64,000 bases of DNA from the sequence record PQ287644.1; one strand, given 5' to 3'. Made by a program: the position numbers and the translations under genes. The notes under the pieces were generated by a model. The model made no database searches. It had not been told where the DNA came from and saw nothing but the letters and a program-made list of their open reading frames with translations. This document shows positions 6,740 through 61,613 of this stretch, piece after piece (the stretch's first letter is position 1; each line of letters opens with the position of its first letter).

Positions 6740-6761
6740 AAACCTACATTATTCATATGAA
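6740..6761 (+). promoter_or_regulatory. Putative phage early promoter
   Basis: aaacctacattattcatatgaa after terminator. Confidence 0.7.
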
Positions 6762-12193: not shown

Positions 12194-12236
12194 GCCCTCC
12201 TGCCTTATTGGCAGGAGGGTGTATGTCCTTTATTTG
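12194..12236 (+). terminator. Intrinsic terminator
   Basis: gccctcctgcc-ttatt-ggcaggagggt then T-rich. Confidence 0.65.
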
Positions 12237-27752: not shown

Positions 27753-27858
27753 AGAAGTAGATAGAGGGTTCGGTCATTAGACCATAAAATTGGTAAATAA
27801 AATAGTACCCAAACCCATATTCTTCACTTACCTGGTTATTTAACTTGAGGTTCTTTTC

Positions 27859-39604: not shown

Positions 39605-40447
39605 CTATTTTGCTTTGGTTACAATCGTTTCAGTCTGCTCACGGAAGACAGCCGCCAGTTCGTTCAGGAGGGTCATCATCGCTCCACAGATGTCCGTAAA
39701 CTCCACAAAACGATTAACCACCAACTCTACTTCAGTCAGTATCTTCTCATCCAGGACGAGGTCATTGGTTTTGATCTTCTCCACCAGGAGTTGCCCCAGT
39801 TCATAGACCCGAGTCAATTCCCGACTGGCCATTTCAACATCCCGAGCGCCCAGTAGCTTGGCCGACACGTTGTAGGTTTCCAGTACGCTGTACAGTTCTT
39901 CGAAATTGACGTAAACTTCACCCAGGGTACACGTCTTGCGGTGGGGGTTGGATGGGAGACCTTTAAGGAACTGTTCGGAACGGTCCAGTACCGTATCGAA
40001 GTTGGTAATGGTCCAACGGAAACGGGTTTCAGGACGACCGGTCTTAATCAGTTGTTTAAGCCAATCGTATAGTCGAATTGCTTCAGTTTTCATACTACTG
40101 ACCAGATAGACCCCATCCGTGGCTACGAATTGAGTATAGGCCATCATATTACCGAGGCCGGGTGTGTAGGTCTCCGGGACAATGACTGGCAACCCAGCGT
40201 TCTTAACAAAGAGAATCTCTTTCCGCTGGATCGTTTTACGGAACTTTTCAACGTCCAGAGTGATAACCGACTTTTCGAAGGCGGCCAGACGGCGGTCTAT
40301 AGAGGCACCGAACTCAGAGAAGAAAAGACCCACACTTTCCCCTACACTGAGTTTTTCAGCCCCCAGGACTGAGAGAAGCTGGGGATTCTTGATCCGTTCG
40401 ATGAAGTCTTTCGATGTAAAGGAATGTTCCATAACTGAAAATCTCAT
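39605..40447 (-). CDS. Conserved phiKZ-like hypothetical/virion protein
   Basis: 280-aa ORF divergent from RecA, core block. Confidence 0.7.
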   Translation of the reverse strand: MRFSVMEHSFTSKDFIERIKNPQLLSVLGAEKLSVGESVGLFFSEFGASIDRRLAAFEKSVITLDVEKFRKTIQRKEILFVKNAGLPVIVPETYTPGLGNMMAYTQFVATDGVYLVSSMKTEAIRLYDWLKQLIKTGRPETRFRWTITNFDTVLDRSEQFLKGLPSNPHRKTCTLGEVYVNFEELYSVLETYNVSAKLLGARDVEMASRELTRVYELGQLLVEKIKTNDLVLDEKILTEVELVVNRFVEFTDICGAMMTLLNELAAVFREQTETIVTKAK

Positions 40448-40544
40448 GAGTATAGTTTGGGGAATGGGTTTTTACGCAGACCCATCTAAAACAGGGCGTT
40501 GCCCTTTCAGCTAAAGTTCATAAAATACGAGGAATAAGAGGAAC

Positions 40545-47175: not shown

Positions 47176-48228
47176 TTACTGAATAAGTTCTTTTGTAAAC
47201 GTGTGTTTCTTGTGAGTAGGTCTCTTACCCTTTATGCATTTCAACACATTAGGGTAAATAAACCCAGCCTCCCTTAATTCTAACCACCCCCTGTACTCCG
47301 TAACTACTCCGGTTTCAATATGCTTAGCAAAGTAAACCCATTTCTGTCTTGCTTCGCAAGGTCTGTCTTTCTGACTCCACTCGTAGTCCTGTATAACCTT
47401 TACAAGCGCGGCGGAAGGGTTACGGTTGAACTTCTCAACACTCTCTTTAGGGATCTCCCTCCAGGTACACCCCCGGTACGTTTTAGTCTTACCTATTCTT
47501 ACGCTATGCAGGGCTTTGTGATCAATACCCAACTCTTCGCATTCCCGTTGACCTACCACCACGAACTCAGTCCCGTTAAACTCAGGTATATCCACCACCG
47601 TAGCCACCATTGGGCGAACAGTCCGATGATCCATACCTGTGAGATTAACGATCAATCCATTTTCCCTGGCGTGTTTCATATTCTCAGCAGAGGAGGCCCA
47701 TTCCAGGTTCTCGAAATCGTTATCGTCCTTAATGGCATTCTTGTGGTTAACCTCTAGTTCCCCAAGGGGATAGTTAAGCAAGTGCTGAGGAAGCGGGTTG
47801 AACCGGTAACACACAAGACGATGAGCCGACATCGGATAACCATCGACTACCAACGTCTTGTACCCTCTTTGAGCAACATATCCACTGAGTGGTCGATAAG
47901 TCCTCAAGTCAAAGAAACGACCTTTGTTACTTACCATCAAGTAATCAAAGTCTCGGTATTCCTTCTTACTGGTACCCGCCTTGGTGTAAGGGAAATACTT
48001 CGCCTTCAACCACACCTCAAAGTCTGGGTCTTCCTTGAGTTTCTTCTTCAGGGCTTTGTTAACGACAGACGCAATGGTCTGGTCGTCCGCAATCCCTATC
48101 AGCTTTACAGCCAACCTGGGCAAAAGGTCCTTCAGGGTATTGAACTCCTTGAAGAATCGAGGGATGTTAACCTTCAACGCCTCAGTATAGTCCAGTTTGC
48201 CATCAACTCTCTTTGCAGGTATTCTCAT
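47176..48228 (-). CDS. Free-standing HNH homing endonuclease
   Basis: AHRLVCYRF...EVNHKNAIKDDNDFENLEWASSAENMKHA; C-terminal NUMOD-like repeats; no intron core in flanks. Confidence 0.9.
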   Translation of the reverse strand: MRIPAKRVDGKLDYTEALKVNIPRFFKEFNTLKDLLPRLAVKLIGIADDQTIASVVNKALKKKLKEDPDFEVWLKAKYFPYTKAGTSKKEYRDFDYLMVSNKGRFFDLRTYRPLSGYVAQRGYKTLVVDGYPMSAHRLVCYRFNPLPQHLLNYPLGELEVNHKNAIKDDNDFENLEWASSAENMKHARENGLIVNLTGMDHRTVRPMVATVVDIPEFNGTEFVVVGQRECEELGIDHKALHSVRIGKTKTYRGCTWREIPKESVEKFNRNPSAALVKVIQDYEWSQKDRPCEARQKWVYFAKHIETGVVTEYRGWLELREAGFIYPNVLKCIKGKRPTHKKHTFTKELIQ

Positions 48229-48236
48229 GAAGAAAT

Positions 48237-48264
48237 CTCCTATTTATTTACCATATAATAGGAG
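48237..48264 (-). promoter_or_regulatory. RBS-sequestering hairpin with TATG late-promoter motif in loop
   Basis: Minus strand CTCCTATT-atATGgtaaata-AATAGGAG, 8 nt before the ATG. Confidence 0.65.
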
Positions 48265-58217: not shown

Positions 58218-59658
58218 ATGAAACCGACTAACATTACCCTCTTAGACCCCCGGACGATTGTTCCGGGTGTCTTTAAACCTATTACGTCTACGGACTCATT
58301 TGAAGGGATGACTCAGAACCTCAATGATGATGGTCTCTTCTCCCTTGACATCTTCGGTAAACTGGGTAGTAAACAACGTGATAACACGGAAGCGTATATC
58401 GACGTTAAACTTCCCATCTTCAATCCCACTTACCTAAAAGCCCTTATACAGATCAAAAGTCTGTATCATTCAATTTTGAAAGGATCGGAATACGCGGTAT
58501 GGGATCCCGAACTGAAGGATTTCATAAAATCGAACATCCTGGAAGGGGAAAAGGGTTTCGCTTTCTTCCTGAAACATTTTGATGAAACCGTCTTCTCCCT
58601 GACCCCCTCTCATAAACGCAAACAACGGGTGGAACTGGCGAACCAATTCCGTAACACGGCGTTAACGGATAAGGTCCTGGTCATCCCCGCGGGTCTCAGG
58701 GATATCCAATTCAATCCAGATGGTTCCCACACCGAACCTGAAATCACCGAATTCTACCGCGCCTTAATGTTCCGGGTGAGGGTGATCCTCGGGAATAAGG
58801 AAGATGCCCTGAACCCCCTTTACGATACCGTTCGGTGGGGGGTACAGAATGCTTTCTTGGAATTGGATAATTACCTCTTTGGTTTACTCCAGGGGAAAGG
58901 GGTGTTCTCCAGCGTCGTATGTCCACCCGGGGGTTCACAACAGCACCCGGAACGTCATTACCGCCCGTAAAGTCTCCAGGACACGTTTAGACTTCGACGA
59001 CGGTGTAGGGCCTAACTCTGCGGACATGGGACTCTACCAAGCCCTGCTGAACTTCCCTTATGTCTGCATCAACGCGTTAACCAACGGCTACCTTTCCAAC
59101 ATCTTCACCCCCAGCTCTCAAACCGCTAAGCTGGTTAATACCAAGACCCTGGAATACGAATACGCTGAAGTCTCCCCCGATGTGGTAGAGAAATGGACTA
59201 CTGCCACTGGGTTAATGAAACTCTTCAACGGGTTTGCTGATCCCTCCCTACGGAGTAAACCCATTGTCATTGAGTGGAGATACTTAGCCCTCATTTATGA
59301 TGATGGGGCTGATGTGTGTGTTCTACATGACATCAACGATCTCCCTCAAGGGAAAGACCGTAAACGGGTGAAACCTATCACCTACATGGAACTCTTCTAC
59401 TTGAGTTGTCACAGTGTCATCGAAGAACAGATCACGGGACAAACCCGGTATCCCATTACGGGAATTGGTTCTATCTTCCCGGCTAAGGTGAACCTACGCA
59501 CCACCACCAATGCGAGCCAGAGGGTGATCCGTAATCCGATTGATTGGAGTGTACGGGAAACCTGTAAACGGTTCCCTAAACGCGAAGCGCATCCCGATTA
59601 CTTCGATGCCATGTCCGTAGACCCCTCTAGAGAAGCTTTGCTCGACAGTGACCATGAT
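58218..59658 (+). CDS. rpoC: Virion RNAP beta-prime N-terminal subunit, exon 1 (two apparent 1-nt shortfalls at 58899-58902 and 58929-58933)
   Basis: DGLFSLDIFG, VLVIPAGLRD, reconstructed GKGGVLQRRMSTRGVHNSTRNVI, ends LDSDHD. Confidence 0.85.
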
Positions 59659-59688
59659 TAGATAGTGATGCATGATATAAACTCACTA

Positions 59689-59740
59689 TACAACTCCTAT
59701 TGTATGCGGAAGTGTTCGCATTCGACCATAAGGAGTTGTA
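59689..59740 (+). promoter_or_regulatory. RBS-sequestering hairpin with internal TATG for the intron endonuclease
   Basis: TACAACTCCT 59689-59698 pairs perfectly with AGGAGTTGTA 59731-59740; TATG at 59703-59706. Confidence 0.7.
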
Positions 59741-59743
59741 AAG

Positions 59744-61015
59744 ATGCTAACGTGTTTTGGAAAGAAATACGTGTTGTCTACAACTAACACGGTTTACAAT
59801 GTCACCGATAAGACAGATGTTCCAGTCCATCGGATGACAGACGGGAATACGTTCTTCATCGCACGGGGCGATGGGGACGAACTGGTTAAGATCAAACTGG
59901 GGTTAATGATCCTCCATGGAGAAGGAAAGTTCCATCTTCCTATCTCTGAATGGGAACAGGTGAAAGTAGGTTTTCTGGATGACGATACAGGAAACTTTGC
60001 AGCGGATAACCTTTACTTGGTCTATCCTGAAGAGGGTATCCCTTACCCTGAACTTTCCGGGTACTACTACATCCCTGGGTTTGAACTCAACGCGATCAAC
60101 CGAGATGGTGTGGTATACCGAACACTTAGAAAGAATCTTTACCCACCGTATCTGGGTGGTAAGACCGTTCCTAACAGTTTCTACCCCTTTGTTCGACTGG
60201 ATGTGGTCAGTGGGGATGAACGCAAGTATGTCCACCGGTTACTGGCGGAGACCTTCGGTAAACCGCCTAAGGGCTACCCCAAGCTACTGGTCGATCATAA
60301 TGACGGTAACAAGATGAACTTCAAGCTCTTTAACTTGATTTGGGTTACCGCTAAGGACAACTCCTTCAAAGCGTACAACAATCAAGAAGCGAGAGCGGAC
60401 AATAATCCCCTGGAGGTTTTTGACAGGGAATTAGGTCAAGTCTTTAAGTACGTCAGTCAAAATGAGTTTGCTAGAACCATGGAGGTGGATTCTTGGTGCA
60501 TTGGTCTGGTGCTCAAACGTCCTCGCTCGGTGTACAAGAACAGGTACGTTCTTCGTCGGAAGGGAGATACACGTGACTTCCAAGAGATCTGGGACTATAA
60601 GCCCCCTGTGGGTAAGAAGATCCTTGCCCGGAATGTCTTCACCGGTGAAATCACGGTGTATAATTCATTGGCGGAGGCCTCTAGAGCAACACAGGTAGGG
60701 ACAACAGGCATCCTGACGTCCCTGAGTAACACCAACCCGAGATCCGCCTTTAAAGACCTTCAATTCAAGCGGGAGTCTGACGAGACCCCTTGGCCCGATT
60801 TGAATGAATACGAACTGGAATGCATCCGGCGCAAGATGCACCCTGCTACAGCTGTGTATGAAATGTTTGATTCGGTAACCCAGGAGACGTCGATTGTGTA
60901 TGGCGTTGATGCAGTTACCCGAATCACCGGAGCCAATCCCCGTACCGTTATCGTTTGCGCACGAGAAGGTAAGTTGCTCCATTCCCGTTATCGTTTCAAG
61001 AAACTTACACGTTAA
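59744..61015 (+). CDS. Intron-encoded HNH homing endonuclease
   Basis: YVHRLLAETF...VDHNDGNKMNFKLFNLIWVTAKDN; three NUMOD1-like C-terminal repeats. Confidence 0.9.
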   Translation: MLTCFGKKYVLSTTNTVYNVTDKTDVPVHRMTDGNTFFIARGDGDELVKIKLGLMILHGEGKFHLPISEWEQVKVGFLDDDTGNFAADNLYLVYPEEGIPYPELSGYYYIPGFELNAINRDGVVYRTLRKNLYPPYLGGKTVPNSFYPFVRLDVVSGDERKYVHRLLAETFGKPPKGYPKLLVDHNDGNKMNFKLFNLIWVTAKDNSFKAYNNQEARADNNPLEVFDRELGQVFKYVSQNEFARTMEVDSWCIGLVLKRPRSVYKNRYVLRRKGDTRDFQEIWDYKPPVGKKILARNVFTGEITVYNSLAEASRATQVGTTGILTSLSNTNPRSAFKDLQFKRESDETPWPDLNEYELECIRRKMHPATAVYEMFDSVTQETSIVYGVDAVTRITGANPRTVIVCAREGKLLHSRYRFKKLTR

Positions 61016-61430
61016 CGAGTTTATATCCATCACTTAGTCCGGCTAGGCACGAAAGTCCTAGACCGTATTCCTCTGAATTGCTGGGAGTTCACAAAAGTCT
61101 GTTGGCTACAACGTAACTGGAAACAGTAAGCGTGAATGCGACCGAAAGGTAGAAAGAACAACAGACCTGACCTACGCTAACCAATACGGCTAAGGGTCGT
61201 AAACAAGGGACAATCAGCCGCTAAGACGCTACCGGGTATTAGACCCTATGCGTAAAGTTCAACGACTAAGGGAGTTATGACCCTGTACACCTACCAAGGA
61301 AGGGGGTGGAAGTGGAGGTGACCTAAGGGGGAATAGACCTATTCCCTACGGTCAAGATATAGTCTGGCCCTGTTTAATAAACAGGCAGGCACCTGAGCGT
61401 GCCGGGTCCTAGTATGGACTGACCACCGCG

Positions 61431-61613
61431 GGCGATCAATTGTCGAGCCATTCTGTTGTAGCGGAAGACAGCAAACAACAGGCCTACGAACTCTTTGGGA
61501 AACGGGAGTATTACATCAGTGGTACGGGTCGGTTTTTGTACGATCCGATCAATGAACCGATTCTCTTTATGTTTAAAGCAGCGACAAGCGGCTTAGAGGA
61601 TATTGAGGTATGA
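61431..61613 (+). CDS. rpoC: Virion RNAP beta-prime N-terminal subunit, exon 2
   Basis: GGC GAT CAA... completes D-H-D/G-D; 60 codons then TGA overlapping the next ATG. Confidence 0.85.
   Translation, partial: GDQLSSHSVVAEDSKQQAYELFGKREYYISGTGRFLYDPINEPILFMFKAATSGLEDIEV

Follow-up and report, generated by a model that had tools for sequence, protein, structure and literature searches.

We examined a hairpin element in a stretch of 64,000 nucleotides (nt) from sequence record PQ287644.1 (hereafter the window), which matches Pseudomonas phage HHBS8_1 at 100% identity and phage EL at about 98%. The element is placed between two open reading frames (ORFs) annotated as RNA polymerase (RNAP) beta subunit, directly 5′ of an annotated HNH endonuclease. 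We think it fairly likely that it is a self-contained, hairpin-gated expression switch for a homing-endonuclease gene, with a late promoter inside. This reading, which resembles that of I-TevI in phage T4, is supported in silico by anatomy, predicted energetics, motif enrichment, recurrence, covariation and intron boundaries. One EL-like record is assigned to Chimalliviridae; Elvirus. Since a nuclear shell protein (chimallin) and the tubulin PhuZ are annotated in the genome, the phage is a nucleus-forming jumbo phage.

The proposed mechanism is as follows. On RNAs entering from upstream (the beta′ pre-mRNA and, presumably, the intron once excised), a 10-bp stem would pair the Shine-Dalgarno sequence (SD) of the HNH gene with an anti-SD strand, and a weaker stem would cover the AUG. 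Because these stems cover both SD and AUG, ribosomes would initiate poorly on the HNH ORF of long RNAs and would be kept out of the intron, and an in-frame UAG, the first intron codon, would halt the ribosomes arriving from exon 1 too. The 8-mer ATTGTATG, directly 3′ of the anti-SD strand, would be a late promoter with the start at its final G. RNA begun at this position (G59706) would be devoid of the 5′ arm, and its start region would be about 5 kcal/mol cheaper to open. With long RNAs occluded and the G59706 RNA freed of the 5′ arm, a late transcript of its own would thus be the main source of the nuclease. The module would move with HNH genes, whether intron-borne or free-standing. Promoter activity, start site, timing and the difference in translation are predictions of this model.

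The hairpin before the intron HNH gene

The features of the element and its gene are the following:
59689–59698, plus strand: hairpin 5′ arm, the anti-SD strand UACAACUCCU (TACAACTCCT in DNA), from coordinates and fold
59694–59706, plus strand: 13-mer CTCCTATTGTATG, containing the promoter-like 8-mer ATTGTATG, with proposed +1 at G59706, from the 13-mer count and ATTNTATG enrichment
59704–59721, plus strand: inner 7-bp stem-loop within the big loop, from predicted folds
59731–59740, plus strand: hairpin 3′ arm AGGAGUUGUA (AGGAGTTGTA in DNA), with the SD AGGAG inside, ending 4 nt before the ATG
59744–61015, plus strand: putative HNH homing-endonuclease ORF of 423 aa, EL gp185 orthologue, from Pfam HNH_3

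The two arms form Watson-Crick pairs at 10 of 10 positions, with AGGAG at 59731–59735 and the HNH ATG at 59744–59746. A first-pass annotation of this DNA had described the 10/10 pairing, the SD 4 nt before the ATG and a TATG at 59703–59706 between the arms, and all of its coordinates proved exact. The minimum-energy fold of 59659–59760, a range suggested there for folding, contained the stem (−27.8 kcal/mol, z = −2.9 versus shuffles). The isolated element (59685–59746) folded at −22.1 kcal/mol (z = −4.5), a value equalled by none of 200 shuffles.

We then considered how accessible the start is. The predicted probability of being unpaired, P(unpaired), was 0.05 for the SD and 0.04 for the AUG; the SD value was the fifth lowest among 69 annotated starts and was stable with 85, 300 or 600 nt of upstream context. 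Similarly, the predicted energy to open positions −15 to +5 of the HNH start was 13.3 kcal/mol, fifth of 69 with a median of 7.6. The earlier claim that the ribosome-binding site (RBS) is locked in a stem agrees with these values, which place the HNH start among the most occluded in the window, and the hairpin would sequester the RBS on read-through transcripts. Neither a sigma-70 promoter nor an intrinsic terminator was found at the element on the plus strand (59400–59900).

A 10-bp stem is not rare by itself, since the window holds 29 perfect stems of at least 10 bp with loops of 3–60 nt, most of them terminator-like, against 3.4 ± 1.6 in dinucleotide shuffles. What stands out about this one is its placement exactly over the SD, not its existence.

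Some other start regions in the window were predicted to be even more occluded, with opening energies up to 28.8 kcal/mol: that of gene 12223, and also starts 44365, 14696 and 50532. Before gene 12223, a GC-rich terminator-like hairpin (12195–12219) carries the SD of the next gene in its 3′ arm. These starts hint that termination is coupled to translation control in this genome, or that starts are mis-annotated.

With regard to the gene itself, the Pfam HNH_3 domain (PF13392, E = 4.7e-11) covers residues 161–207 of the ORF. Homologues at about 34% identity are found inside the same RNAP gene of phages ZK_P1, FishSpeaker, PDCC-1 and 2 TSL-2019, and phiKZ gp179 shows 26%. By its HNH motif and by these same-gene homologues in distant phages, 59744–61015 probably encodes a homing endonuclease.

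The promoter-like 8-mer and its recurrence in HNH leaders

The TATG at 59703–59706 is part of the 8-mer ATTGTATG (59699–59706). A TATG anywhere in the 32-nt loop has a chance of about 1 in 10, so that its weight comes from the extended motif and its recurrence and not from the 4-mer itself. Counts for the extended motif class, ATTNTATG, were made over the whole genome of 211.7 kb, of which the window is 64 kb. Seven of the 17 genome copies of ATTNTATG were found upstream of genes, in intergenic sequence and in sense orientation, versus 0.6 expected (binomial p = 1e-6), while control 8-mers with the final G changed did so in 2 of 22 copies. When all 16,382 patterns of the form xxxNxxxx were ranked without bias, ATTNTATG came fourth; ahead of it were two T-rich patterns (TTTNTTTT, TATNTTTT) and another promoter-like box (CTANATTA).

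Five of the ATTNTATG sites lie outside HNH leaders and precede the major head gene, a virion structural gene, the first gene of a lipase/tail-fibre/structural operon and two hypothetical genes. Further ATTNTATG sites in the window are these:
27783–27790, minus strand: ATTNTATG site (ATTTTATG), 43 nt 5′ of the first gene of the operon with lipase, tail-fibre and virion structural genes
40519–40526, minus strand: ATTNTATG site (ATTTTATG), 72 nt 5′ of the gene starting at 40447

The site before the capsid gene is conserved well beyond the EL-like phages. CATTTTATGT, or a variant differing by one base, was located 55–60 nt 5′ of the major capsid ATG in EL-like phages, Joad, ZK_P1, FishSpeaker and PDCC-1, a CAT(T/G)NTATGT box being kept in these five jumbo phages with capsid proteins only 40–57% identical to that of EL. 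In phiKZ, TATG with +1 at the G is needed for initiation by the non-virion RNAP (nvRNAP) and is held in a pocket of its beta-like subunit (PMC4666361; PMC12809450). From the association with structural and capsid genes, together with this phiKZ start-site precedent, we infer that ATTNTATG is a late start-site promoter of an EL-type nvRNAP.

Three further observations concern the upstream regions and composition of these genomes. The major capsid 5′ leader of five jumbo phages carries a palindrome (AACAAAyATrTTTGTT-like) about 20 nt 3′ of the CATTNTATGT box (L017 25781–25866, L069 326–403, L068 424–515, L070 246–346 and L071 260–362 in our locus numbering), which may be a regulatory hairpin or binding site. 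A second conserved upstream box, TTTTAAAC-CTAnATTA, occurs at 6744, 12949 and 44902 of the window, among others; 10 of 20 copies of CTANATTA were upstream, intergenic and in sense (p = 4e-10), and the box probably represents a further class of EL promoter, active early or in the middle phase. In the coding sequence of the whole genome, AATT was strongly avoided (z = −18.7 versus synonymous shuffles), the strongest effect among the 4-mers tested.

The 13-mer CTCCTATTRTATG (R at position 9) has only two exact copies in the genome, both in HNH leaders, with about 0.013 calculated by chance. The second copy belongs to a free-standing gene, HNH-2:
48226–48264, minus strand: second module copy in the HNH-2 leader, consisting of CTCCTATTATATG (48264–48252), a loop, AAUAGGAG, 8 nt and the ATG at 48228, with an 8-bp stem hiding the SD
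47176–48228, minus strand: HNH-2 ORF of 350 aa, from Pfam HNH_3

In this leader CUCCUAUU pairs with the SD AAUAGGAG, and UAUG again stands 3′ of the 5′ arm. HNH-2 is part of a 1066-nt insertion (48263–47198, minus strand) present only in HHBS8_1 and absent from eight other EL-like genomes; the insertion starts with the leader module, replaces 38 nt just past an upstream terminator hairpin and is recent. Similarity between the HNH-2 and intron HNH proteins is confined to the HNH motif (E = 0.005), and the leaders otherwise do not align. An origin of the common 13-mer in recent paralogy of these genes was therefore ruled out.

The same layout (anti-SD arm, TATTATATG, SD arm, ATG) was also found in two genes of Raoultella phage ZK_P1 and in Klebsiella phage phiKp_32. 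The closest relatives of HNH-2, ZK_P1 gp266 and phiKp_32 2400 (37% identity), have a 9-bp stem over GGAG and an invariant UUAUUAUAUG beside the 5′ arm; their stems differ at two pairs, one altered in a compensatory way (A-U to G-C) and the other from C-G to U-G. The intron HNH gene gp270 of ZK_P1 and the metagenomic contig L082 carry UAUG at the arm-loop junction of a 10-bp SD-hiding stem. Overall, SD-hiding stems were predicted in at least 10 homologous or analogous HNH leaders, and in five the motif stands directly 3′ of the 5′ arm or overlaps its end. Single-protein and alignment queries of IMG/VR for homologous loci yielded two new leaders (L082 and L083), and a scan of the same resource for the 13-mer with AGGAG gave 41 matches, about chance level by estimate, of which only the EL contig was relevant.

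The effect of starting at the TATG was predicted for three of these leaders, as the energy to open the start region:
Intron HNH (start G59706): 13.3 kcal/mol in the full leader, 8.1 kcal/mol when truncated at the TATG G (window median 7.6)
HNH-2: 9.2 kcal/mol in the full leader, 4.8 kcal/mol when truncated at the TATG G
ZK_P1 gp270: 19.2 kcal/mol in the full leader, 9.7 kcal/mol when truncated at the TATG G

The RNA from G59706 was predicted to begin with a 5′-terminal 5-bp stem-loop (59706–59719).

Taken together, these comparisons suggest a wider proposition, on which we are evenly divided: that a portable leader of about 35–60 nt (anti-SD arm, ATTNTATG late start-site promoter, SD arm) sits on HNH homing-endonuclease genes of nucleus-forming jumbo phages, travels between genomes and between intron and free-standing contexts, and limits the nuclease to a dedicated late transcript made by the sigma-less phage RNAP. 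The same comparison would give the EL, RisingSun, Miami-like and Aphrodite group its first consensus for late promoters, CATTNTATGT.

The host gene and its group I intron

The HNH gene lies within the following gene structure:
58218–59658, plus strand: exon 1 of a virion RNAP beta′-like N-terminal subunit gene (EL gp184 orthologue), from EL/HHBS8_1 annotation, tblastn to the intron-less Erwinia phage Joad and junction alignment
59659–61430, plus strand: group I intron of 1772 nt, from the Rfam core match, the Joad exon junction and gapless spliced alignment
61012–61384, plus strand: ribozyme core, P2 to P9 region of the Rfam model (RF00028, 46.2 bits, E = 1.4e-9)
61431–61613, plus strand: exon 2, GDQLSSH...EDIEV and then a stop, from the Joad junction and spliced translation

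Exon 1 ends in ...DSDHD with U59658 as last base. The 5′ splice site follows this U and the 3′ splice site follows G61430, the last intron base; the first intron codon is the in-frame UAG at 59659–59661. Searched separately, the exon pieces adjoin exactly at 215285|215286 in Joad. The joined exons (LDSDHDGDQLSS) align without gaps to the uninterrupted Joad sequence (LGSDHDGDALSA) across the catalytic DxDGD motif of the virion RNAP beta′ gene, which the intron interrupts. The RF00028 match covers the full model (1–253), and its 46.2 bits are just below the gathering score of 50; in relatives, introns at this site and at adjacent ones score 51–92 bits. A 64-nt stretch of the core is 91% identical to the ORF-less intron of phage VP4B. 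On this basis 59659–61430 appears to be a genuine group I intron, and the gene model should read join(58218..59658, 61431..61613). The first-pass annotation had called the ORF an intron HNH nuclease, and the HNH_3 domain (E = 4.7e-11), the Rfam core match and the junction restoring DSDHD|GDQL bear this out.

Across 59659–61613 no public record annotates the intron, exon 2 being labelled as a small hypothetical protein or missed. In the deposited record exon 1 is also frameshifted: two 1-nt deletions in G runs (58898 and 58929), seen against six other EL-like genomes, divide this exon of the essential virion RNAP beta′ gene into two overlapping ORFs (58218–58970 and 58849–59661). These deletions are probably homopolymer sequencing errors in the deposited record.

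A search for the P1/guide pairing gave several 5-bp candidates (G59735, G60947, G60987 and others), none of them decisive. In the ORF-less VP4B intron the guide sequence is GUUAUC, 11 nt into the intron, and GUUAU(C) recurs at 60987, in the 3′ end of the HNH ORF, a hint that the P1 loop may contain the ORF together with its leader. Related introns occupy three adjacent sites in the codons of the DxDGD motif: D|xDGD in phiKZ and 2 TSL-2019, DxD|GD in EL, and DxDGD| in VP4B, ZK_P1 and FishSpeaker.

The PDCC-1 intron (L004 956–2700, compared with L003 and L005) is chimeric, matching the 2 TSL-2019 intron (D|YDGD) over its 5′ 1648 nt and that of VP4B (DYDGD|Q) over its 3′ 416 nt. The 12 nt coding for YDGD between the two intron sites are absent, and the predicted spliced beta′ would be without the catalytic DxDGD. 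A third HNH gene of the HHBS8_1 genome (L016 17145–19978) lies 3′ of another RNAP subunit gene; a group I core signature, AAGATATAGTC, precedes its ORF, and its leader is without the 13-mer. This region probably forms a second intron that carries the ORF close to the 3′ end.

Alternative readings, known systems and significance

Several observations weigh against a switch with an internal promoter. Plain TATG was not enriched upstream of genes (36 observed versus 31.9 expected), so that the bare 4-mer is insufficient to justify a promoter claim. Depletion of TATG in genes (z = −5.5; CATA z = −5.8, versus synonymous shuffles) was tried as a promoter signal and rejected as non-specific, being equalled or exceeded by TATA, ATAT, TTAT and AATT. 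ATTNTATG itself was noticed before being tested, and its Bonferroni-adjusted p in the unbiased ranking is about 0.016; its N position is A or G in the two HNH leaders and T or C before structural genes. The leaders of 2 TSL-2019/PDCC-1 and FishSpeaker carry ATTTTATA, not ATTTTATG. The phiKZ gp179 leader has a perfect 10-bp SD-hiding stem and no TATG, and it is the orthologue in the sole phage with validated TATG promoters. Truncation at G59706 frees the SD only in part (predicted P(unpaired) 0.30), because AGUUGU can re-pair with ACAACU at 59780–59785. Among seven EL-like genomes the 85-nt leader has a single variable column versus about 3.8 expected, a difference that is not significant, and with this one column (59712, in the tetraloop of the inner stem-loop) these genomes give no covariation. 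Finally, the searchable literature yielded no transcript 5′ ends or expression data for EL-like phages.

The first-pass interpretation is supported in each part open to in silico testing, with some restrictions. The TATG proposed as a late-promoter motif holds up as part of the ATTNTATG class, enriched and present before the capsid gene in five phages, but not as a bare 4-mer. A start there, said to expose the RBS, does lower the predicted opening energy from 13.3 to 8.1 kcal/mol, about the genome median, but the exposure is partial. Covariation, suggested as a check, was positive in homologous HNH leaders (the compensatory change between those of ZK_P1 gp266 and phiKp_32) but not among the EL-like genomes.

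The best surviving alternative is that the hairpin acts on its own. The stem would repress HNH translation without any internal promoter, expression would come from stem breathing, RNA processing in the loop or refolding after splicing, and TATTRTATG would be an RNA-level site for a nuclease or translational regulator. The SD-hiding hairpins without TATG in phiKZ gp179, 2 TSL-2019/PDCC-1 and FishSpeaker fit such a scheme. They also led us to judge the hairpin the general feature, with an embedded promoter that may be confined to the EL and Miami-like lineages. Moreover, the motif is transcribed in every case, and because of this its DNA-level and RNA-level roles are inseparable by sequence alone. 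We nevertheless hold this alternative to be unlikely: the same 8-mer class precedes capsid and structural genes without an SD hairpin, TATG is an experimentally defined start site in phiKZ, and five leaders place the motif either straight after the 5′ arm or across its end, where a start site would have to be.

Alternatively, the conserved box could be an operator through which the nuclease or another phage protein autoregulates transcription, in addition to a promoter role or instead of it. I-TevI offers a precedent, with an autoregulatory site overlapping its late promoter (PMC2988022), and the box is conserved more strictly than a 4-nt start motif needs. It is however common to two unrelated HNH proteins with different targets and also stands before capsid genes, and its likeness to the homing site, by inspection, is limited to ATTGT, which makes an operator improbable in our view.

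We give slightly less credit still to a stem that is a structural part of the ribozyme (a P1 or P2 extension, or an internal guide holder) and overlaps the SD incidentally. GUUGU at 59735–59739 could pair with the exon end AUGAU through 5 pairs, 3 of them wobble, and the position of P1 is not fixed. Yet the module also precedes free-standing HNH genes without an intron, it is missing from the ORF-less VP4B intron with its closely related core, whose guide word is found in the window at 60987, and the Rfam model begins at the end of the ORF or 3′ of it in all six introns compared. A random 10-bp inverted repeat with a chance TATG in its loop, for which speak the 3.4 such stems per window expected from shuffles, the shortness of a 4-mer and the chance-level IMG/VR scan, is scarcely credible given a stem that covers SD and AUG exactly, a second exact 13-mer in another HNH leader and a layout that recurs with compensation in other phages.

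For a hairpin-gated switch with an internal late promoter, the nearest known parallel is T4, where hairpin-gated expression is documented for I-TevI, I-TevII, I-TevIII, SegB and MobE and protects intron splicing; this work, including that of Gibb and Edgell, is reviewed in PMC2988022, and the I-TevI precedent invoked by the first-pass annotation is as it stated. In both systems the homing-endonuclease gene may be intron-borne or free-standing and is embedded in a longer transcription unit, the SD is covered by a stable stem, and a promoter-like element lies within that stem or at its edge; translation is predicted from the short transcript only, which would protect intron folding. They differ in the promoter class, ATTNTATG overlapping the start site (phiKZ nvRNAP type) in EL-like phages as opposed to TATAAATA with gp55 in T4, and TATAAATA is absent from 59659–59743. 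The EL-like polymerase is a sigma-less multisubunit phage RNAP. In addition, the EL-like phage is nucleus-forming, with transcription and translation in separate compartments. Because the promoter class differs, the EL element would be analogous to the T4 set without belonging to it.

Similarly to phiKZ late promoters, the EL-type motif has TATG with a purine-rich start and its class lies before capsid and structural genes. The informative unit is longer in the EL type (ATTNTATG, or CATTNTATGT at the capsid gene), plain TATG being uninformative; the phiKZ promoter P119L (TTGCTATG) does not fit ATTNTATG, and promoter activity in EL is predicted. HNH group I introns of phiKZ gp56, gp72 and gp179 were predicted in 2002 (cited in PMC10914365), and that of PhiPA3 gp210 is described in PMC11620839. 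The EL locus shares with phiKZ and PhiPA3 an HNH ORF in a group I intron at the catalytic aspartates of an RNAP subunit, and phiKZ gp180-gp179-gp178, whose gp179 intron scores 92 bits, is syntenic with it; the EL intron site is one codon pair away from that of phiKZ and 2 TSL-2019 and from that of VP4B, ZK_P1 and FishSpeaker.

The intron and HNH arrangement in jumbo-phage RNAP genes was thus already known, as was the regulatory logic from T4. In the searchable literature we found no description of EL-type promoters, of the expression mode of jumbo-phage intron nucleases or, as the first-pass annotation had supposed, of hairpin-gated logic for jumbo phages. What would be new is a T4-style hairpin-gated late promoter in a nucleus-forming jumbo phage.

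The PhiPA3 nuclease gp210 shows that a jumbo-phage intron nuclease can act as a weapon between co-infecting phages (PMC11620839). Late genes of the EL-type clade can be annotated at once with the help of the ATTNTATG consensus, which also offers a handle on how a 4-nt start-site motif gives nvRNAP its specificity, and the compact module could act as a late-only expression cassette for engineering therapeutic-candidate Pseudomonas phages. If the proposed switch is real, the T4 solution would have arisen again on a different transcription machinery, in a virus whose splicing and translation take place in different compartments.

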